This document shows positions 2,406-43,642 of a stretch of 64,000 nt of DNA, in pieces; position 1 is the stretch's first letter, and every line of letters starts with the position of its first letter. Under the pieces are notes generated by a model. The model worked only from the letters and a program-made list of their open reading frames with translations. It did no database searches and was not told where the DNA came from. The stretch is from Lepidodermella squamata. Lineage: Eukaryota > Animalia > Gastrotricha. The stretch lies in NCBI GenBank assembly GCA_047495785.1, contig JBLDXI010000042.1:744001-808000 (forward strand), written 5' to 3'. A program made the position numbers and the translations under genes.

Positions 2406-5249
2406 CTAACATTGTGGGACAGGGAGCGGGCCGGGCGGCAGGCGAGCGTTGAGAAGGAAGACAGGCGACTTCACAGGCGGCGACGCGGAAAGCCGAACAT
2501 TCTCGATGTCTTCGCGAAGCGGCAGCACAAAGCGTACGACGTTGTCGGCATAGCGGCACTGGACGGCTTTTAAGTGCGAGGACAGACTGGGCAGGCGACA
2601 GCGCTGCTCCAGCGCACTAACACGAACACGATCATCGAGACGGACATGGAGAATGGCGCGCAGACAGTTATTCTGAAGCACGTCTAGGTGGCGGAGCTGC
2701 GTCTTCGCAGCAGACGCAAAGGAAACGAAGCCGAAGGTGGCGATGGAACGGACGAGCGCCAGGTAGGCGGTGCGGCGCCACCGAAAAGACAGCCCTGGCC
2801 GGCTAACAACCGAGCGGAACCACGACAGATTCTTCCCACAGCGATGGAGCACATGGTCGACATGGGGCTTCCAGGTCAACTTCTCATCGAACAGAATGCC
2901 CAGAATTCGAAGTACAGAGACTTGCGGGATGACAGTGCCGCCAAGCACGAGCCTCACACCGGGGGGACGACGGGAGAATGCGATAACCTCACTCTTTGCG
3001 GCGTTGAATTGCTGCCGCCACAGGCAGGCCCAAGCGGCGACGCGATCGACTTCCGCCTGAGCACACATCTCAGCTTCGGGGAACGAGGCACCAGAACCGA
3101 CAACCGTCAGGTCATCAGCATAGGCATCCAAGTCACAGCCAGGGGCACTGGGGGTCCGGAGAAGATCGCTAGTGTAGATGACATAGAGTAGGGGCGACAG
3201 CGGGGAACCTTGCGGCACGCCGCACTGCAGCTGGACCTGTCTGCTCAGAAAACCCGCAACGCGAGCTTGCAACTTTCGATCTCGAAGATAGTCGGCGAGC
3301 CATCAGACCAGGTTACGCGGGAGGGGCAACTGGCCAAGCTTGTAGACGAGACCGGCATGCCAGACCGAGTCGTATGCGGCCTTGACATCCAGGCCGACAA
3401 CTACCACCTTGCGCTTATCCACACGAGCCTTGTGCACCCTGTGGGCCACGCGGACAGGGACGTCCACCGCAGACCGGTGCTCACGAAACGCGAATTGATT
3501 ATCCGGCAATAGATGTTGGTCCTCCAGCACCTGGCTCACCCAGCGGGCGATGATTGCCTCGAGAATCTTGCCGTCAGTAGGGAGTAACGAAATAGGCCGC
3601 TGCGAGGACACCGCAGCCCTTGGCTTGCCGGACTTCGGCACCGCCACAGCCACAGCTTCCTTCCAATCAGGCAAGGCGAAACCACTGCCGAGACACATGT
3701 TGTACAGCCGCCTGAGGTGAATCTGCAGGGGAACACCGCCCCACTTGTAGTAGACATTGCCGATGCCATCGAGCCCAGGCGCCTTGAAAGGCTGCAGCCG
3801 ATCGATCTCACGCGCTAGCATTCGTTGGCTGACGCTAAAGTCATGAGGCCCAGGGAGCCGAATCACACCGACTGGCTGCAAGGCCGGGTCGTTGGCCATC
3901 GCATGTTCCAGCTCGAGCCACCGCTGACGCGTTGCCGCATCGGCGGCCGGATCACAGTAGGGATACATCGGGGCGATAAAGTGAGTGAGTAGCTCGTCGG
4001 CCAGAGTCACGGACGGGTGGAGGATACTACCGTCAGGGAGCGTCATGGGCCCACACGTGCGGGGCTGCTGGTGCCGGTCAAGTTGGCGCAGGCGCACCCA
4101 AGCTTCGCGGTAACGAAGTTGTCCAGATAGCGCTTCGACCTGCCGCAGATTGGCCACGTCACGACGAAAGGCGTGCCGCTCCTTCGCATCTCGGAACGCA
4201 TCGTCCAGACGCCGCAGTTCGGCCGCAAGAACGGGGTCAACATGGCCACGGATTGCCCGCTCCAGTACTCGCTTCTGCTTAAGAAGGACTCGCATCTCGG
4301 AGGACAGAGAAATCTTTTTTAATTCGCTACGGTCGCAGAGGGGAACATGAAGCCGACGCGCCTCAGCCAGAGAAGCGTTAATAGCGCGGCGATAAGTCGT
4401 CAGGCGGGCTTGCGGATCGCCAACCTGAGGAAGAGCAATAGCGGCGAGTAGCGTCCAGAGCGTGCGTTGGTAGCCATGGCGATCGGCCCGAGATAAATCG
4501 AATCGAAGGGCAGGCTCAGGGTCGGGCAGACGCCGCCTCACCCCGAGTACGGGGACGTCGAAACGAGTGGAAGTGCTAAAGTGGTCGCTGTTGAATCTGT
4601 CGCCGACGGACACGTCACCGGTGAGCAGGCAAAGGGCAGCGGCGTTGAGGACCCACACGTCAAGCGTAGACAGACTACCAGTTCTCAGATCGATGTGCGT
4701 AGGAGCAGAGCGTAACACAGTTAACCCGAGCCGAGTGGCGACATGGTGAAGCTTGTATCCATTAGGGTTCCACAGGTCAGTAGTGCCCCAGAGCGGAGAT
4801 TTCGCATTGAGGTCACCTGCAAAAACGCAAGGTGTGAGATCGGCAGTCGCCTCTTCAAATTCGCGTTCGAGAAATCGCAAGTCTAAATCGGAAGACGGTG
4901 GACAGTAGCCGGTGACGAGTCGAAGGGCCGCAGCACGAGGATCAGGGACAACGTCGAGACGGAGCCATTCGCTACGCTTGCGACCCACAAGCGCCAGTTT
5001 GCGCTCGCTAAGGACAGTGACGCCCTCCCGAACGAGGAAGGCCGCTCCACCGCACGACCCCCTGTACAGCAGTTCGTCCGGGGCCTGCTCCCTATCACAC
5101 CTAAAGACAGCGAAATGATCGAAGAACACAGAAGAGAGAGAGAAGTAATAGGTTTCACTTAAAAATACAAACAAAGCATCAATTAAGTCAGATAAATACG
5201 TTATTTCGACAGGCTTGCCATTGGCACCCTGAGGGTTCCACTGCAGCAT
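2406..5249 (-). pseudogene. LINE ORF2 (AP endonuclease + reverse transcriptase) with a single in-frame TGA at 3303-3305
   Basis: EN motifs QWN, LSET, GDLNA, SDH; RT motifs KAPGLDGI, RPISLL, LDVKAAYDSVWH, GVPQGSPLSP, YADD; ORF pieces 3303..5852 and 2406..3272 share a frame (PRNLV*WLADYL). Confidence 0.9.
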
Positions 5250-5265
5250 AGAGACGGGAATGAGC

Positions 5266-6804
5266 TCAGTTGTCGTCATAGCGGTACGAGCCGGTGCCAT
5301 CCATCCGCTGGTCGTTGCCGCCACTGTGGAGGTCGTAGACTTCATTGGACAGGTGAGCCAACGATTCTTCGAGGTCCCTACGCCAGGCGACCTGGTTAGC
5401 GCGATCAGCCGCGACGGCGTCAGACAGGGCGTGCAGTTGTAGCTGGATATTCTTGAGCAGAGAAGAGATGCCCGCAACAGCAGCACTGAGCTGTGCAGAA
5501 GAAGACGACTCGGCGCCGGGGGGAACCACGGGACCAGAGAGAGGCGTAGCCGGCGTCGACGGCGGCGGCGGCGGCGGCGCAGCGGTGTGAGCAAAGCTGC
5601 GACCCGGGGTGACGTGGGACGACCTACCACCACCATGCCGAATGCTGGCAGCCGCGGCAAGCTTGTCGAGCTTGGCAGCAGCGTGAGCACGTCGGGATTC
5701 GATCTCAGCCGACTGGGCGGCCTTGAATGCGGGGCAGCCGCGCCAGGTGCAGAAATGCTTCGGAGCCCCGCCATCGGGACAGTTGCAGCAATGAGCTTCC
5801 GCGAGGGTTGCTTCACACTTCTCAGTAGGGTGTTTCTGAGCGCAACGGCCACACTTTACCGGGGTACCGGGCGGGCAGTCGATGGTAACATGCCCATACC
5901 GGTTGCACTTACGACACTTTGACGGCAACACAGGGGGGCGAAGAGGCCGAACTCTGACGCGTCGGTTCAACCACTTGAGGCCATTATCGCGTGCATCTTC
6001 GTAGCCTTCTTTATTCGCGAAAACAATGACCCGGGTGGGGGGACGATGGGGATTCTTTGCTGGCAAATCACGAATTTCCTCGACATAGTCAGGCGAGAGG
6101 TGGGCCCGCAGATCGTCAACAGAGTAGCAGGCCGACAGACGCGAGGTCAGCACGGTACGGTGTTCTTTCTCTACTGCAGGAGGCAAGGGACGAGTAGAAT
6201 CTGGCTCACCGGGGCGATGAACACGGTAGTTAGACCCTCTGAAGGCACCGGCGACAAGGTCCCTCTTCAGGAGGCGATCCGCTGCAGCCGGCGTGGAGCA
6301 GATGACCCGAAGGCCACCACTCCGCATGTCGACCGCCGCTTGATACTCGAGCCAGGGCGCAGCGCGAACTAGCTCGGGCTCGAGCTCACTTCGAGACATG
6401 CCAAAGACATTATCAATGATAACCACGCGTTTGCTAACAGGGTTAGACGGGGCCGGTGCTTGACGAGCCGGGCCGACAGGAGCACCACGAGGGGGCAGAG
6501 TTGGCGGCTGGTTGGTGACCGGCGGAGAAGACGACGACGCCCGAAGCGCCGGAAAATCGGCGTCGGCATCCATGCGGTCGACGGAGGACGACGGAGAGGC
6601 ATCGGCACTGCGGTGCTGTAGGATGAGTGCTTGGACCTCGGCGATGGCAGCGGCCGAGAGGCCCTTCACATTGAGTTTCCTCGGCAGCTTCGCGCCGTCA
6701 GTGGCAGACGACGGTGGGTCCGGTTTTGACTTCTTCTGCTGAATGCCCCCATCGGGCGGGCGGCTTCGGCGGCGACCGGAGGGCGGTCTGCCGTTTTCAG
6801 CCAT
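5266..6804 (-). CDS. LINE ORF1 gag-like nucleic-acid-binding protein
   Basis: Three zinc knuckles (CRKCNRYGHVTIDC, CGRCAQKHPTEKC, CCNC...H...C) after an RRM-like region; likely ATG at 6804. Confidence 0.88.
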   Translation of the reverse strand: MAENGRPPSGRRRSRPPDGGIQQKKSKPDPPSSATDGAKLPRKLNVKGLSAAAIAEVQALILQHRSADASPSSSVDRMDADADFPALRASSSSPPVTNQPPTLPPRGAPVGPARQAPAPSNPVSKRVVIIDNVFGMSRSELEPELVRAAPWLEYQAAVDMRSGGLRVICSTPAAADRLLKRDLVAGAFRGSNYRVHRPGEPDSTRPLPPAVEKEHRTVLTSRLSACYSVDDLRAHLSPDYVEEIRDLPAKNPHRPPTRVIVFANKEGYEDARDNGLKWLNRRVRVRPLRPPVLPSKCRKCNRYGHVTIDCPPGTPVKCGRCAQKHPTEKCEATLAEAHCCNCPDGGAPKHFCTWRGCPAFKAAQSAEIESRRAHAAAKLDKLAAAASIRHGGGRSSHVTPGRSFAHTAAPPPPPPSTPATPLSGPVVPPGAESSSSAQLSAAVAGISSLLKNIQLQLHALSDAVAADRANQVAWRRDLEESLAHLSNEVYDLHSGGNDQRMDGTGSYRYDDN

Positions 6805-7066
6805 ATAATCAGTAAGTAATGTGTCGCTGAATAGCACAGACGATCACCAACAATTTTAACGTAAAACTGTTAAATACTCATGGATGCCTTTCTAATTCAT
6901 GGAGACGCTTTCTACTGAAGCCAATTTACTTCGGTGAAAAAACCAAAAAAGGTGTTGAATATTGCAAAACTGAAACGAGAAGTTCAGTTTCATAACAGTG
7001 ACATGCTGTAATTTTTTCACGGCAGAAAACGCATTGTTTGTAATTTGATGATGAATGCATGCCGCC

Positions 7067-36563: not shown

Positions 36564-39500
36564 ATGAAATCGCAATTTTTCATCCTTCTAATTCTGGCGA
36601 TTTTCCAAGATGTGTCAATCACCTCATCTAATGACGGGTCTATCCCAGAAATCTTAGATAGCATTGGCTACATTGAGGTTGACTCGAATTTCAACTTTGA
36701 CGATGCAGATCTTCTGCCAGAGTTGGCAACAAGCAAAATCGGAACTGTTGTATACAACGTCTGTTTGCAATATCGCTCGAGACTAACTTGAAATATCTGA
36801 ACTTTGATTGCAGGAATCAATCTACTTGGCTTCGTATTTTGTATCGGACATCAACTCGACGTATCTGAAACGCGTGCCTCTGCCGAACTATGCAGTGTTT
36901 AAAATCGCTTCGATTGAAGTTGACAACAAGACTGAGGCGATCGCAGACATGAAATATCGCTTCTACCCATCGATTGGCGTCTGGCAGGAACTAATTCAGA
37001 CAGAGAGAGGAATCAAGATATCCTCAGTTTTTGGCTGCACTTTCTACCCCAGCCATTCTTACTTCCATTTTATGAGCATTATAGCTGATGGCAAGTTCGT
37101 TGGTTCGTCGGTTCGATTTCATCAAAACGAAAGCTACGCCAAACTTCTGAGTGATGGCAACTATAAAGTTAAAATCAATAAAACCTTCGAGACTGTGGCT
37201 AATCAGAGATTCAGGTGAGCTATTTTTAGTTCTAATCCAGCTTATTTGCTAACCCCTCAGAATCTCAAAAACTATGACGGTTGTCGCAGACCGTGTTCCG
37301 TTCCGTCTGTCGTTAGGGAGGATAGTGGGGTCCCCCAAAACTGTGCAAGGAGGATCAGTGTGTAGTATTAAAAAATGACAGCGGGAGTTTCCCGTCAACT
37401 GTCAAAGGCCGCAGGCCGACAGTGTAAATAAGGATATAGTGATTCTATTATGTCAGGGTATCGGTGTGGTGAAATTACCGAAAAACGAGACTCAATCAAC
37501 CGTGGCGATTTTTGACAAATATTGAGTATTTCAAAATGCCAACATTCGCTAAGAATTCAACATTCAACATAATTTGATGGAAATTTGAGGAATAATGCAT
37601 TGAATGATGAGGAATTTAAGGAATCCTTAACGTGCTGAAGGCAGAAACGAGATTTCAAGGGCTGAAATAGAGGATTCCTGTTCCCACATGGTTGGTTATT
37701 TTCTTAAGAAAAACTAATTTTCCGCTCGATATCTGGATAAAATGCCCTACCACTCATACACCCATGGCGTCTGATTAAATTAATTTTGTTTGCATTTAAA
37801 AATCAACCTTAAAAAATCGTTTAACAAATTCTATTTGCTTCATTTCTTTTGTGCGTGTCAAATATCGTGCGTGTCAAATATCGTCCAGAACTGACTATTT
37901 TGATTGGCTATAAGCTCATCTCTCAGTTTAAGCGTTCAATAAAAATAGTTTTTGTTAAGATCCTGTCTTTGATTAAAATTTCGGTGTGGCTATTGGCACA
38001 TACATTATGTGCCCCTTAATGGCTATTGGCACATAACATTTTTCATTCAACTGCTTTTTTCGGGAGTTTAATTCCCAGATACCAGCATTTCAACGTTGCA
38101 TTAGCAATCTAGGGGCGGCGAATTCACTGGAATCGTCGGATTTCGCGTAACTGTGGGATAGACTTCAGATACTCTACTTGGGCTACCCATTAGATGACGG
38201 ATACCCCGATTTGCGGGCCCATGACTGCAATTTCGATATCGCCATTCGATTCCCCGTTGACGAAAACCCTAATATCAATACTCGTTGAACATTTCGATGC
38301 GTGACTTTCTAAAACATCGAAAATTGAAATTAGCGTTATGTGCCAATAGCCATTAAGAGGCACATAATTATGTGCCAATAGCAACACCCTTAAAATTTTT
38401 CTTAGCTGATGTAATCCCTTAATGGGGCCTTGTTCTTTTGGGTAATTCAGATATCTGGATTTTAGAAATGAAAAATGAAAGGTCCACCTTAAACGCGTGA
38501 GTGGGCGAAATCACCGGGCGGAAACACATTTTCCATTGAAGCAAAAAATAACCAACTTTATTTTCCATTCTAGAAAAGTCGAATTCTTCGATTCGCAGAG
38601 CGTCAGTTCCGCGACTATATGTGTAAACAGCACTTTTGCTCTTGATGGCAAACTCTCATTCGATGTGGCAATCACTTCCGAGGTTACTGAATCGGCAGTA
38701 TCCTTCCAGACTATTGATCAGTTGGCAATGGAAGCTCAAGGCGAATTGGAGTTACTGATGGCTGGATTGTTATCAGCTAGAACTTTGTTCGAAGCTCACA
38801 TCGGCGGATGGCAGGCTTATCACATTGGTGGTAGTGTCAGTGTGAAAGGGAAAGGTTTGTCTATTAAAAAATAATCATGAAGTCGTTTTCAGAAGTGCCT
38901 TCTACTTTCATCAGGACCTCAGCAAGCTGTAATAAGTAGAGCGATTCAATCCGCATACTATCAAGTTTTCAGCCAAATCGTCGCAACCTCGAGATCCAAC
39001 TTAAAACCCTCTCAGGAGGTAAGATATTTCTTTGGAGCTTCCGCGTGTGGCCTCGGCCGCGGATCATCCCGGCGCCAGTTTGGTGGACATCGAAATGTGG
39101 AGCATGACATTTTTCTCTTTCAACCTGTTGCTTGGCTCCATCATGAACTTGCGAACCAGATGATGTTGCTGCTCCCACCAACCCTCCCCGTTCTCAACAT
39201 ATACTCCTACGAAACTGTAATTAGGGATGTTAACCTAGAGGATGCGGCTCCAACTTGGTGTAAACACTGCTCAGAGCAAGGCATCTACAGCGACGGCCTC
39301 TTCAGTTTCGTCACACGAATTCTTTACTTCATCACTGGGGCAAAAACTCGTTCTGATATCTTGCTCGAAAAGAACCGCAATATGAATGAAAAATTCATCA
39401 GCGAATTATCAAAAGATAACAACAGCTTCATCTCGATTACCGGCGTTACTGGGCCGGATGAACTTCACATGTATCAGTCGAATAACCTGGTTACCAACAC

Positions 39501-42500
39501 CCTCGGCCAACTCGCAGTTCACTTCACGCAGTATCTGGCCTGCCTAAATCGAGAGCCAATCAATGACGAGTTGTTGGATAGAGCAATGCGAATAAAGTTT
39601 CCGTATGATAATAGTACGAATATCAACTATCAGTTTGATGGTTTCAATTTGAGTGATGCGATCTCCCAGGCTGATGCTCTTCTGGCTCACTTTCCAGTTG
39701 GATACAATTTCTCCGGGCGTTTCCTCGAGCAAGCCCCGCCTGAGATGCTGAGGAAGGATATTGACGTAAAATGATTTTGTATTTAGTAATAATATTTGGG
39801 ATGTAGATATAGAAGTTCAAGTTAGAAGGACCACAGAGCACCAAGTGCAAACCTAACAGGATGTAAAGTTCACGAAACCCCAGCTTCGACATTTCAACCT
39901 CTGTACAACCCAGGGTGCGATCTTCGATGCCCGAGCTCCCCGAAAAACATTTTTGGCTGTATTTGCTAATAACCGAGCGAAGCGAGAAAATCAGTGTGGA
40001 ATAACGTGGTGGGGATGGTGGATACGGTACCCGGCAGTTGGCCCTTTTTAGCCCGTACCCGCCGGGTATGACCGCAGTGCAAGCAAAATAGTTGGGAACG
40101 TCAACCAATCAGGATCATTGTTTACAGTTCACAGCCAATCAAAGCAGTTCTCGCACTGACTCCCTTTAAAACGCAGCTCGCAGCTGATTGGCCGGCTCTA
40201 ATAACTTCAGAGAGTGTGGCAGCGCACTAATGCTACTTGATATACTGCGCGCCCCCAATCCCCCTGAAAGTCGCGCACTGGAACAGCCCCATGTGGGACC
40301 CCGTGCAGCTGGCAGGGACCCGAAACAACCATCTTCCGCACCCCTTCAAACAACCAAGCCGGAAAATGGGCTCAGTTAAGATGCTTGATATAGGTTTTGT
40401 TTCTAGGATCAATTTAGTATCTGAAGCTTTATCTAATGGACATAATTCCTAATTTAGCCCCCATGAGAAGAAACAACTTTACGGAACATATGGAATATGT
40501 GCTTAATTTGAAGCGAAGTTCCAACTTAATGATAATCTCCTATTCAGCTCTTTTTGATAATCAAAAATCAAATGAAAAATTTTATATTCTGGTTTTTAGA
40601 ACTATAATCGTCGATTTGGCAGATCTTCCAATGATGGTGTTGGAATCGTAGAAATTCCTGCAACATCTCTATCAGTCAAAGCCATTCTTGAAATGCAACT
40701 GGCCACGGTGGATTCCCTAGCAACCGGTCGGAAGGATTTCGAACTCTTGCTGCAAAACTACCAATCTGGTCCGTTTATCATCTGGCGGAACGTGACTGAT
40801 GTGAAAAATGCAGCAATTGGACACACCTATACCGCAGCTGCATTTTTAGGAGTTTTAATGTTCGGATTTGGCGGGCTTCGTATAAGGAACAATCGGGTCG
40901 ATATTCAACAGCCATCGTTACCGGATGGCATTGACAGCCTTACACTGTCACAAATCGCATTTCTAGGCTACGAAATCAACTATCACGTCAATGCATCGCA
41001 TATTACCTTGTTGTCGCTAAGTGAGAACTTCAGGAAAACAACACGGCTATTCAGTCGAATGAAAAACGGGTATATTCCACTGACATCAGCTAAGGTTACG
41101 CTGGAAATCCCACCAGTGGCCGAGACGTCTGATACGACTGCGGCGATTTACTCTTTCATTGCGGATAGCAGCTCGAAATGTATTTTGGATGATCGAAACT
41201 ACAACAGCCACAACCCGTACTATTCTGTGGACGAAGCCGAGGACAATTCCAAAAAATCAGGTATCTTTAGCCAGTTCAGTGTAGGAAGGATCCTCGAAGT
41301 AGGGGTACCTTTGAGCTTCAAGTATTTACGTTCCCGAGTTTATCGGACCAAAGCAGTGCGCTAGTGGTATAGCTAGTTGTAAAGACTATAGACCCAACAC
41401 TACGTCAATGCCAAGGTGGAAAACACCAACAAGACCCTTTGGCCATATCGGGGCACGAAAACACTGCATAGTTCGGATCCTACATCGAGCTCTGAATCCC
41501 CTACATCTTGCACTGAATGGTCCCCCTTTGGGTTTTCAGGTTTTTTGTCTTCGCCACTCGAGCTGGGTAGTGCACGAAGTAGGATCCTCGAACTAGGAAG
41601 TGTTTTCGGGCCCCGATATTAAGGCCAAAGGGTCTCTCCGTGGTTTTGTTGGGGTTTCCACCTTGGCCTCGTGGCCCCCATTCCTCCCGTACGTGCACTG
41701 GAGTTGGGGGTACTGTTCCCACTACTGTTCACCCTGTTCACTGTACTGTTCACCCCCGTACTTCGAACACTGCGCCAATTATTAAAGTGTATTTGTGAAT
41801 TTTAGATTCTGGGGACGATCAACTGCTCCTGATCATTCTGACATCCGTTTTTGGCGCCATTGTCGTCATAGTCTTAGGACTTGGGTTCCTCTATCGAAAA
41901 CGGTTTCGTAAAAAGGCAGCTAGCATCGTGGCGAACAGCGATTCCAGCTACATCGTACCATTCGCAGACTTCACAAAGCTACTCGAAGGCATGGAAGGCG
42001 CACAAGATCTTATCATCCTGATCGAGCGGATCAACGTGTGCAACGACTGGCTCGAAATAACCGGCATACTGGGAACTGGCCACTACGGCGCCGTGCAACA
42101 AGCTGTTCTTCGCATGCCCGGGCAGAGCGAGCAAGACGTAGCCGTGAAGAGCATCCGGCCCGATGTTAAGTCTGATTTTGTTGGCCTTATCAAAGAAGCC
42201 CATGTTATGAAAGACTTCGACCACGAAAACGTTCTGCCGCTCATCGGAATCGCGATTCTTCACGACCAGCCGCACCTTATCGTGCCTCTCATGCAAAATG
42301 GGACTCTGAAGGAATATCTGAAGCCGAAAAGGTTGGCAGATGTTAGTTACAGCGAAAGGATGCGGTTCATCACCCAAATTTGCGATGGTATGGTGTACCT
42401 CCATTCGAGGAATTGCCTTCATCGAGATTTGGCCTGTCGTAATGTGTTGCTGTCTAGCGATTTAACGTGTAAGATTTGCGACTTTGGCCTGTCGCGAGTG

Positions 42501-43541
42501 TTGGAGCAGGAGGATGACTACTATCGAACGTCGACGGAGAATGAGTATGCTGTACCGGTCAGGTGGCACCCGCCCGAGTCTGTGATGCGGAAAATCTTTG
42601 TTCTCAAGAGCGATGTTTGGTCTTTTGGCGTTGTCGCCTGGGAAATTTTCACAAGTAAGGAAACGGAGTTCGCTAAATCTTCTAAAATACTTATTTCACC
42701 TGTTCGAAAGTTTTATTTCCCGAGAGACAAGCATAGTTCAGTTCTTTGATTAAGCAAAGGAATCCCTCCATGAGAACCAAAGCAAGAAGAAAGTTTGTTC
42801 AACCCTGAAAAATACCGAATATGCCCGAAAAAGTTACCTTCGGGTTTCCAGTTTTTCTCCAGCTTGCTCCATAAATGATGGGAACAGTGTAGGATCTTCG
42901 AACGGGGGAATATTTTCCACCCGGAACTTTTTTACAAAAGGTTCCCTTCGGTGGTTTATTCGGGTTTCCAAGCCTGGACCTTTCGAACTTGTTGACCAAA
43001 GGTTCCCTTCGGTGGTTTATTCGGGTTTCCAAGCCTGGACCTTTCGAACTTGTTGACCAAAGGTTCCCTTCGGAGGTTTATTCGGGTTTCCCAGCCTGGA
43101 CCTTTCGAACTTGTTGACCAAAGGTTCCCTTCAGTGGTTTATTCGGGTTTCTCAGCCTGGACCTTTCGAGCTGGGGGGTATGAAACCTGAAACCTTTATT
43201 ATTACCCTCTTTATTATGTAAACTGAGTGGAAATTCATGATGTTGAAGATTCAGTTAAAAGATGTTATTCTTCTAACAGACTGCGAACGCGAACCTTACG
43301 ACCAGCTTCAAGCCATGGAGGTTATTTTCAACGTTTGCCACGGTTATCGATTGCCAAAGCCAACGGCGTGCCCAGATAAAATGTGAGTATACAGAACATA
43401 TCGAACCATATTTTCTCTTAATTTTCATTTTCTAGCTACGATGATATAATGGCGAAATGCTGGCAGCAAAATCATGAAGATAGGCCGTGCTTCAAGCAGC
43501 TTCAGGAAATGTTACAAGATCAAGCATTCACCCATTGTTAA
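36564..43541 (+). CDS. Receptor tyrosine kinase with GH65/PGGHG-like glycosidase ectodomain; exons 36564-36758, 36814-37214, 38574-38854, 38915-39765, 40600-41260, 41806-42654, 43280-43382, 43436-43541 (~1148 aa)
   Basis: All seven GT-AG introns are phase compatible; signal peptide; GH65-like motifs (AYYQVFS, GASACGL...GH, GVTGPDE, SQADALL, FLGVLMFGFGGLR); TM LLLIILTSVFGAIVVIVLGLGFLY+RKRFRKK; TK motifs GTGHYG, VAVK, HRDLACRN, DFG, PVRW, SDVWSFG, CW; AATAAA at ~43591. Confidence 0.85.
37983..38388. mobile_element. MITE in RTK intron 2; a solo end of the same family lies at ~26301-26355
   Basis: TIR ggtgt(g/t)gctattggcacata...tatgtgcc(c/t)cttaatggctattggcacataac and its reverse complement. Confidence 0.75.
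41277..41772. mobile_element. Repeat/MITE with internal inverted repeat in RTK intron 5; related copy at ~10185-10325
   Basis: Inverted arms ~41410-41482 vs ~41580-41667; shared aggatc(c/t)tcgaactagg and gttcacccc(c)gtacttcg motifs with 10185-10325. Confidence 0.6.
42938..43170. repeat. 61-bp minisatellite, ~4 copies, in RTK intron 6
   Basis: Unit aaggttcccttcggtggtttattcgggtttccaagcctggacctttcgaacttgttgacca. Confidence 0.9.
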
Positions 43542-43642
43542 TTATTTCAGCTTTGCTTTGGTATACCATTTGAATTTTTGTACCTAATTCAATAAATAAA
43601 TCTTTATTCGAAAAAAGTATTTCTTTCAATAAAATCGTGAAA

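Follow-up and report, generated by a model that had tools for sequence, protein, structure and literature searches.

A gene in a 64,000-nucleotide stretch of the gastrotrich Lepidodermella squamata genome (hereafter the window; assembly GCA_047495785.1, contig JBLDXI010000042.1, positions 744,001 to 808,000) raises the question of what a glycoside hydrolase family 65 (GH65) domain does on the outside of a tyrosine kinase, and whether it is still an enzyme. Six-frame reading revealed GH65-like segments, followed by a membrane helix and then a tyrosine kinase. A gene model built from splice sites, reading phase and paralog comparison joins these segments into 8 exons with one open frame of 1148 amino acids (36.5–43.6 kb, + strand). 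The gene thus modelled is intact and encodes a type-I receptor tyrosine kinase with a GH65 ectodomain. We propose, at a probability of roughly 0.7, that this ectodomain no longer catalyses and serves instead as a ligand-binding or sensing module through which the kinase is controlled across the membrane.

Searches were run exon by exon, and the joined protein was used for numbering, alignment, the ratio of non-synonymous to synonymous substitution rates (dN/dS) and the tree. Exon 4 (38915..39765) holds the first two thirds of the (α/α)6 catalytic-type domain. Alone, it matched PF03632 at 22.5 bits (E 6.6e-5), under the curated 27-bit cut-off, and in a phmmer search of the PDB it matched human PGGHG (9sd4-9sd8; E 8e-13 for 9sd5), the GH65 protein-glucosylgalactosylhydroxylysine glucosidase also called ATHL1. 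In that alignment GHRNVEHD lies on GHVFWDQD of the enzyme, GPDE on SPDE and SQAD on KQAD. Exon 5 (40600..41260), which holds the final third of the barrel plus the C-terminal beta domain, gave no match of its own in phmmer against the PDB and was aligned only by the family profile. That profile (A2), made from the window gene and its paralogs, matched human PGGHG with an E-value of 8e-30 over 370 positions and placed W-R-N on W-T-E of PGGHG; it also matched kojibiose phosphorylase (4.6e-14) and FjGH65A (7.2e-12), an alpha-1,2-glucosidase of Flavobacterium johnsoniae (PDB 7fe3). The ectodomain is significantly similar in sequence to the catalytic domain of GH65, and the barrel spans approximately amino acids 293-690 of the window protein, ahead of the C-terminal beta domain. 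An AlphaFold2 model of a single-exon paralog (L008), computed from a 60-row alignment, reached a predicted local distance difference test (pLDDT) score of 86.3 and a predicted template modelling (pTM) score of 0.91. Its best matches in the PDB were the same human PGGHG entries (9sd4-9sd8; TMq 0.71-0.73, E 1e-23), and the top 20 matches were all GH65. As modelled, the whole GH65 fold, (α/α)6 barrel plus beta-sheet domain, is intact in the family.

What became of the active site can be read against two enzymes. In FjGH65A, Glu472 is the general acid and Glu616 the general base, subsite -1 is made of Trp, Asp, Lys and Gln, and a Glu-to-Gln change at the base position leaves less than 0.1% of wild-type activity (PMC8626586). 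Across all GH65 enzymes the -1 glucose subsite consists of Phe, Trp, Asp, Lys and Gln, with Phe as a platform, and a Tyr (Y337 in FjGH65A) hydrogen-bonds the base (PMC11442529). For PGGHG, the titles of its PDB chains confirm E430 and E574 as the residues taken to be catalytic in the field, naming 'E574Q' and 'E430Q/E574Q' mutants in complex with glucose or kojibiose; one of these chains reads W-T-Q. We aligned 27 canonical PGGHG-like proteins with 8 family members. At these columns the canonical proteins show Y F W D E K Q ... E, and all 27 (100%) agree on the base and on F, W, D, K and Q. The corresponding residues are F N V E E S Q ... N in the window protein and F [NIT][VPH][ED] E S Q .. 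R N across the family.

Each change falls at a defined place in the translation. In exon 4, the Tyr partner of the base is Phe348 (39079-39081), GHRNVEHD (amino acids 350-357) lies at 39085-39108, GPDE (amino acids 472-475) at 39451-39462 and SQAD (amino acids 543-546) at 39664-39675; in exon 5, PFIIWRN (amino acids 634-640) lies at 40771-40791. In the profile alignment to PGGHG, Asn640 takes the place of the catalytic base Glu574 (E616 in FjGH65A) and is invariant in all family members, Glu355 that of the WD aspartate and Ser543 that of the KQAD lysine. The general acid (E430 in PGGHG, E472 in FjGH65A) is retained as Glu475 in GPDE. Because the general base is replaced by Asn640 and the base-positioning Tyr by Phe348, the domain is predicted to be unable to hydrolyse by the inverting mechanism of the family. 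The canonical glucose subsite has been dismantled as well: Asn replaces its Phe, Val its Trp, Glu its Asp and Ser its Lys, and only the Gln remains; any ligand is then probably held otherwise than in PGGHG.

An earlier examination of the DNA (the sequence-only reading) had reported these four motifs, and direct reading with translation bears out all of them; alignment to GH65 enzymes (profile E 8e-30 to PGGHG) likewise places Asn640 at the base Glu and Val at the Trp, with the GPDE Glu kept. The WD aspartate is changed to Glu355, and to call it lost would overstate the case, as a carboxylate is kept. Its summary, that binding is kept and catalysis altered, holds for the second half, since a base turned to Asn and a Tyr turned to Phe speak well for a pseudo-enzyme; the first half fails, at least for glucose bound as is usual in the family, on the N, V, E, S, Q reading of the -1 subsite.

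The retained acid raises the alternative that the domain is still a glycosidase, its base role having moved to another carboxylate (for example Glu355 or Asp643) or its rebuilt subsite taking a different sugar. Glu475 is present in every copy of the genome, a carboxylate occupies the WD position, a conserved Asp stands three residues past Asn640, and weak activity has been claimed for Klotho despite a missing catalytic Glu. Against this stand the loss of activity on Glu-to-Gln substitution of the base (to below 0.1%), the presence of the base Glu in 27/27 canonical relatives, the Tyr-to-Phe change that removes the hydrogen-bond partner of the base, and the absence of the -1 Phe, Trp and Lys. 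Moreover, a metagenome relative of the family (P0003) has lost the acid, reading GTDK, and kept WRN. We therefore regard continued glycosidase activity as improbable.

A cysteine motif also sets the family apart. A C-x-x-C (WCKHC, 39259-39270, exon 4) occurs in all kinase-type and contig C15 copies and not in canonical PGGHG. In other GH65 enzymes the loop region where it falls builds subsite +1; the motif could be a disulfide or a metal site.

If the pocket no longer cuts sugar, is it nevertheless maintained? A paralog search over the same genome (121 Mb, 151 contigs) recovered a twin of 88% identity on contig C36, copies arrayed in tandem on C30, a pair of genes without a kinase on C15 and a divergent GH65-like gene on C59. 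The kinase-type architecture is present in at least 12 genome copies, and the altered motifs are fixed in at least 14 paralogs of the genome and also in the one metagenome relative. Every copy examined carries GPDE, SQA[DE] and WRN-x-[ST]. The sequence-only reading had proposed dN/dS at pocket residues among orthologs as a check; between paralogs it came to 0.09-0.34, and in the comparison with the C36 twin exon 4 stood at 0.34 and exon 5 at 0.17. The ectodomain family is under purifying selection. Columns around the active site are conserved above random blocks (0.63 vs 0.47, p about 0.01), and five positions have one fixed residue across the family that none of the 27 canonical proteins shares: Ser543, Arg639, Asn640, Gly650 and His651.

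Such conservation bears on a second alternative, in which the GH65 fold survives to serve as a glycosylated, rigid spacer or as a self-associating scaffold holding the kinase, its former pocket free of ligand. Two of the old -1 subsite positions vary between close paralogs (platform N/I/T, Trp position V/P/H), no ligand can be named, and many GH65 enzymes are oligomers, all of which would fit a scaffold. A fold kept for its shape alone is, however, hard to square with the five family-specific invariant residues, with GPDE being invariant in this genome or with active-site neighbourhoods conserved above average, and we consider it unlikely, if less so than retained glycosidase activity. The sequence-only reading had left a lectin-like and a purely structural conversion side by side; the purely structural version carries the same low probability. 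An inactive hydrolase kept for another job is the best reading, because the base and its Tyr partner are lost, the domain is extracellular on a receptor kinase, and the family is under purifying selection.

The remaining family members differ in how they are built. Both kinase-less genes on C15 (L008:4524-7088 and L009; about 4.76 and 4.78 Mb) end in a hydrophobic C-terminal tail, which could be a glycosylphosphatidylinositol (GPI) signal or a tail anchor, and each adjoins ELO fatty-acid elongase genes. The C59 gene (L010:5022-7594) is much more divergent (PF03632 4.1e-10), has GPYD in place of GPDE and lacks GH-FWD; it may be a second, independent pseudo-GH65. At least one copy has decayed, as a family-member fragment at C30:1123710-1123949 contains two in-frame stops. 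No canonical PGGHG was visible in the assembly, where an annelid PGGHG query gave nothing above 29% identity in an exon-by-exon six-frame search. The CLPTM1 protein of this genome is closest (57% identity) to those of molluscs and other spiralians, which points to a bilaterian, probably a spiralian, and speaks against the sponge origin that the ankyrin-rich scaffold of the metagenome relative P0003 might suggest.

Where did this family come from? When 1.84 billion representative proteins were searched by HMMER using the family profile, one close relative emerged, P0003 (396 bits), a kinase-less protein of 796 amino acids encoded on a metagenome scaffold (L013) next to an ELO gene, as on C15. 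P0003 shares WRN and is the only family member to have lost the acid motif; because it kept WRN all the same, the function conserved in the clade would seem to have no need of the acid. The other top profile matches were ordinary animal PGGHG-like proteins with W-[TS]-E, and a kinase was absent from all of the best 150; no fusion of GH65 to a kinase came up in this protein set. A word search with a 599-amino-acid paralog gave only two distant GH65 proteins. For the kinase exon, the best word-search match (42% identity) was ruled out as an ortholog, its kinase standing beside a CUB domain instead of GH65. Nor did the literature searched contain a receptor tyrosine kinase with a glycoside-hydrolase ectodomain.

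In a maximum-likelihood tree the WRN proteins form a monophyletic clade (SH-aLRT 100) that branches from within animal PGGHG-like proteins, beside an annelid PGGHG; its stem is very long, at 2.0 substitutions per site. Within it, a kinase-type subclade (support 99) separates from a kinase-less group (support 90). On this tree the WRN clade derives from animal PGGHG. Two further proteins annotated 'PGGHG-like' have lost the base and other active-site residues: P0011 from the hemichordate Glandiceps talaboti (XP_077992271.1), with Asn at the base position, and P0024 from the mosquito Sabethes cyaneus (XP_053692205.1), with Lys. As both fall outside the WRN clade, these are independent losses, and animals have evolved GH65 pseudo-enzymes more than once.

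What the rebuilt pocket might hold is suggested by the phosphorylases of the family. The base Glu of the hydrolases and the phosphate of the phosphorylases share one place (PMC8626586), and the phosphate site is made of a Lys or Arg, a Ser-Ser pair and a His (PMC11442529). His651 (40822-40824, exon 5) stands in the phosphate-binding His column of a phosphorylase (P0002), where canonical hydrolases have Phe in 27/27. Arg341 (39058-39060, exon 4) is at -7 from the Tyr/Phe position and may match the Lys/Arg; the loop alignment is ambiguous there, and 7/27 canonical hydrolases also have Arg. The two consecutive phosphate-binding serines are Pro-Ala in the window protein, as in hydrolases. The base sub-pocket would thus have changed from a carboxylate beside Phe to Arg-Asn beside His, with Arg341 possibly near, and this arrangement suggests an anion-binding site. 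In its specific form, a cationic, phosphorylase-like anion site made of Arg639-Asn640, His651 and probably Arg341 and facing Glu475, the idea is tentative and more likely wrong than right. If it were true, receptor kinases, along with lipid- or tail-anchored relatives, would use a former glucosidase pocket to sense an anionic ligand; the candidates would be a glycan bearing phosphate or sulfate, a uronic acid, or even free phosphate or sulfate.

The same residues could be taken further, to a third alternative in which a bound anion replaces the base and attacks the sugar as in bacterial GH65 phosphorylases. His651, a possible Arg341 and the positive charge added by Arg639 point that way. Working against it are the Pro-Ala at the serine positions, the loss of the common -1 glucose subsite, the Arg at -7 that is also found in hydrolases, and the extracellular location of the domain. 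Because both the Ser-Ser pair and the glucose subsite are absent, true phosphorylase chemistry is very unlikely, more so than hydrolysis by a relocated base. A different fate for the pocket is suggested by Asn640 itself, which opens an N-V-T sequon (40789-40797, exon 5); the sequon N-[VLIS]-[ST] is invariant in all 15 sequences. Judged from this motif, Asn640 could be glycosylated, its own glycan filling the old active site.

Sequons are also frequent elsewhere in the ectodomain, as the sequence-only reading had noted. The ectodomain has 12 N-x-S/T where shuffles give 7.3 +/- 2.4 (p about 0.05), a real but modest excess; the cytoplasmic part has 1. Of the sequon types listed earlier, three lie outside the range 38915-40900 to which they had been assigned, NKT and NES in exon 2 and NAS at about 40990; the range itself runs from exon 4 through intron 4 to midway in exon 5.

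Do the GH65 and kinase exons belong to one functional gene? All exon junctions of the joined model have GT-AG borders. Exon 1 (36564..36758, +) provides the start codon, a hydrophobic N-terminus (MKSQFFILLILAIFQDVS) with the signal peptide at 36564-36617, the onset of the GH65 N-terminal domain and a GT donor. Exon 2 (36814..37214, +; AG/GT sites) encodes the N-terminal beta-sandwich domain. It matches the N-terminus of P0003 (BLASTP 5e-9) and is colinear, weakly, with amino acids 12-70 of Owenia PGGHG (E 0.21). Exon 3 (38574..38854, +), with AG/GT sites and fitting phase, completes the N-terminal domain and adds a helical linker; exons 4 and 5, also on the + strand, come next. Exon 6 (41806..42654, +) carries the transmembrane helix (amino acids 803-826; 41823-41894), a juxtamembrane segment and most of the tyrosine kinase domain (PF07714, E 1.9e-63), including HRDLACRN (42420-42443) and DFG (42480-42488). 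Exon 7 (43280..43382, +), supported by AG/GT sites and reading frame, encodes the kinase C-lobe, and exon 8 (43436..43541, +) the end of the kinase domain with its CW...RP motif and the stop codon. The end of exon 8 is intact (…CWQQNHEDRPCF…) and the layout is the same as in the C36 twin. With VAVK and a YY activation loop also present, the kinase has its catalytic motifs, and the protein combines a signal peptide, a single membrane helix and a cytoplasmic tyrosine kinase domain, as a receptor tyrosine kinase does. Over 43228-43620, which takes in exons 7 and 8 with the intervening intron, identity to the twin (L012) reaches 96%, against about 88% for the rest of the gene; this may reflect gene conversion or stronger constraint.

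Transcription was assessed in a public run of the same organism (X1), which is RNA-like and presumed to be RNA. X1 covers exons 3-8 and none of the non-repeat intron bins. The exon 3 pieces (38627-38690 and 38752-38809) show 0 mismatches when compared with the window and 5 when compared with the C36 twin; for a piece from exon 6 (42247-42305) the counts are 0 and 3. Because these pieces match the window exactly and differ from the twin at 3-5 sites, the window copy itself is represented in X1. A contig of X1 ends at the exon 5 donor (41260) and continues into exon 6 sequence that exactly matches the twin. The GH65-kinase splice join is thus seen for the 88%-identical twin, and we infer it for the window copy.

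A decaying gene or an annotation artefact, in which the GH65 and kinase exons do not form one functional gene, would account for the failure to see a full-length transcript in X1. It is largely refuted by the uninterrupted 1148-amino-acid frame across 8 exons with canonical splice sites, the dN/dS well under 1, the exon-only coverage in X1, the spliced GH65-to-kinase junction in the twin and the same architecture in at least 12 copies, and is the least probable of the alternatives considered here.

The introns hold repeats of their own. Introns 4 and 5 (39792-40313 and 41532-41705) and intron 6 (42.8-43.2 kb) contain interspersed repeats, whose depth in a DNA run (X2) is 10-60x that of neighbouring bins, and intron 6 has three similar copies of a short element with the translation PKVPFGGLFGFPSLDLSNLLTKGSL. 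Elsewhere in the window, a GC-rich (0.53-0.59) non-LTR (long terminal repeat) retrotransposon occupies 2406-6837 on the - strand, with a gag-like open reading frame containing a CCHC knuckle, an 849-amino-acid endonuclease/reverse-transcriptase frame and a further reverse-transcriptase fragment.

Several observations weigh against a sensing module that has given up catalysis. A purely non-catalytic pocket would not quite be expected to keep the general acid, yet every copy in this genome has it, and the strong conservation round the old active site may simply reflect the barrel core. The fold was predicted on the paralog L008, 35-40% identical, instead of on the window protein. As for the gene, the RNA nature of X1 is presumed, and among its short contigs no one molecule joins the GH65 and kinase parts of the window copy. 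Klotho, although lacking a catalytic Glu, is still debated as a weak enzyme (PMC11696049). Weighing these points, we retain the sensing module as our preferred model: the PGGHG-derived ectodomain would keep the GH65 fold and Glu475 while losing the base and the glucose subsite, would bind or sense an extracellular ligand without cutting sugar, and on binding would regulate the tyrosine kinase across the membrane.

On this model the large, selected family, in an assembly where no canonical PGGHG was found, would be a natural experiment in turning a glycosidase pocket into a sensing site. The window receptor offers an expressible protein for asking which extracellular cue is read, and the family-specific invariant residues S543, R639, N640 and H651 are direct mutagenesis targets.

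Among known proteins, human PGGHG is the best match for the family in both sequence and fold. The N-domain, (α/α)6 barrel and C-domain are colinear in the two, and the general acid motif is kept (SPDE in PGGHG, GPDE here). PGGHG is a soluble enzyme, whereas the window GH65 domain continues into a membrane helix and a tyrosine kinase; the domain also differs by Glu574 to Asn at the base, Tyr to Phe at its partner, Phe-Trp-Asp to Asn-Val-Glu and Lys to Ser. FjGH65A has family and fold in common with the window domain, and also Pro-Ala at the phosphorylase serines. Unlike the window domain, however, it is an active bacterial hydrolase with a full -1 subsite, and Phe625 occupies its equivalent of His651.

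Reuse of an enzyme fold in receptors has precedents. In receptor tyrosine phosphatases gamma and zeta, a dead, carbonic-anhydrase-like enzyme fold serves as ligand-binding ectodomain, and the discoidin domain receptors (DDR) are collagen-sensing receptor tyrosine kinases; the folds of both are unrelated to the window GH65 domain, and nothing here supports collagen or its sugars as its ligand. Alpha- and beta-Klotho, GH1-like co-receptors of FGF receptors, are membrane-anchored glycosidase folds in which each domain is without one catalytic Glu (PMC11696049). Like the window receptor, they put a glycosidase fold into receptor tyrosine kinase signalling, whereas they have the TIM barrel of GH1 and act as separate co-receptors, not as the ectodomain of the kinase itself. 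Plants have receptor-like kinases with a chitinase-related GH18 domain, such as tobacco CHRK1, with 91 plant sequences described (PMC5485988). These resemble the window receptor in using a whole glycoside-hydrolase-family domain as the ectodomain of a single-pass receptor kinase, and differ from it in the Ser/Thr kinase, the GH18 fold and their unrelated origin. The databases and papers searched contained no animal receptor tyrosine kinase whose ectodomain is a whole glycosidase fold, and neither a GH65 pseudo-enzyme nor a GH65-tyrosine kinase fusion was described in the literature and proteins searched. Overall, dead enzymes as receptors are known from Klotho and the plant chitinase-like kinases, and to these the gastrotrich family would add a GH65 pseudo-enzyme, new to the databases and papers searched.

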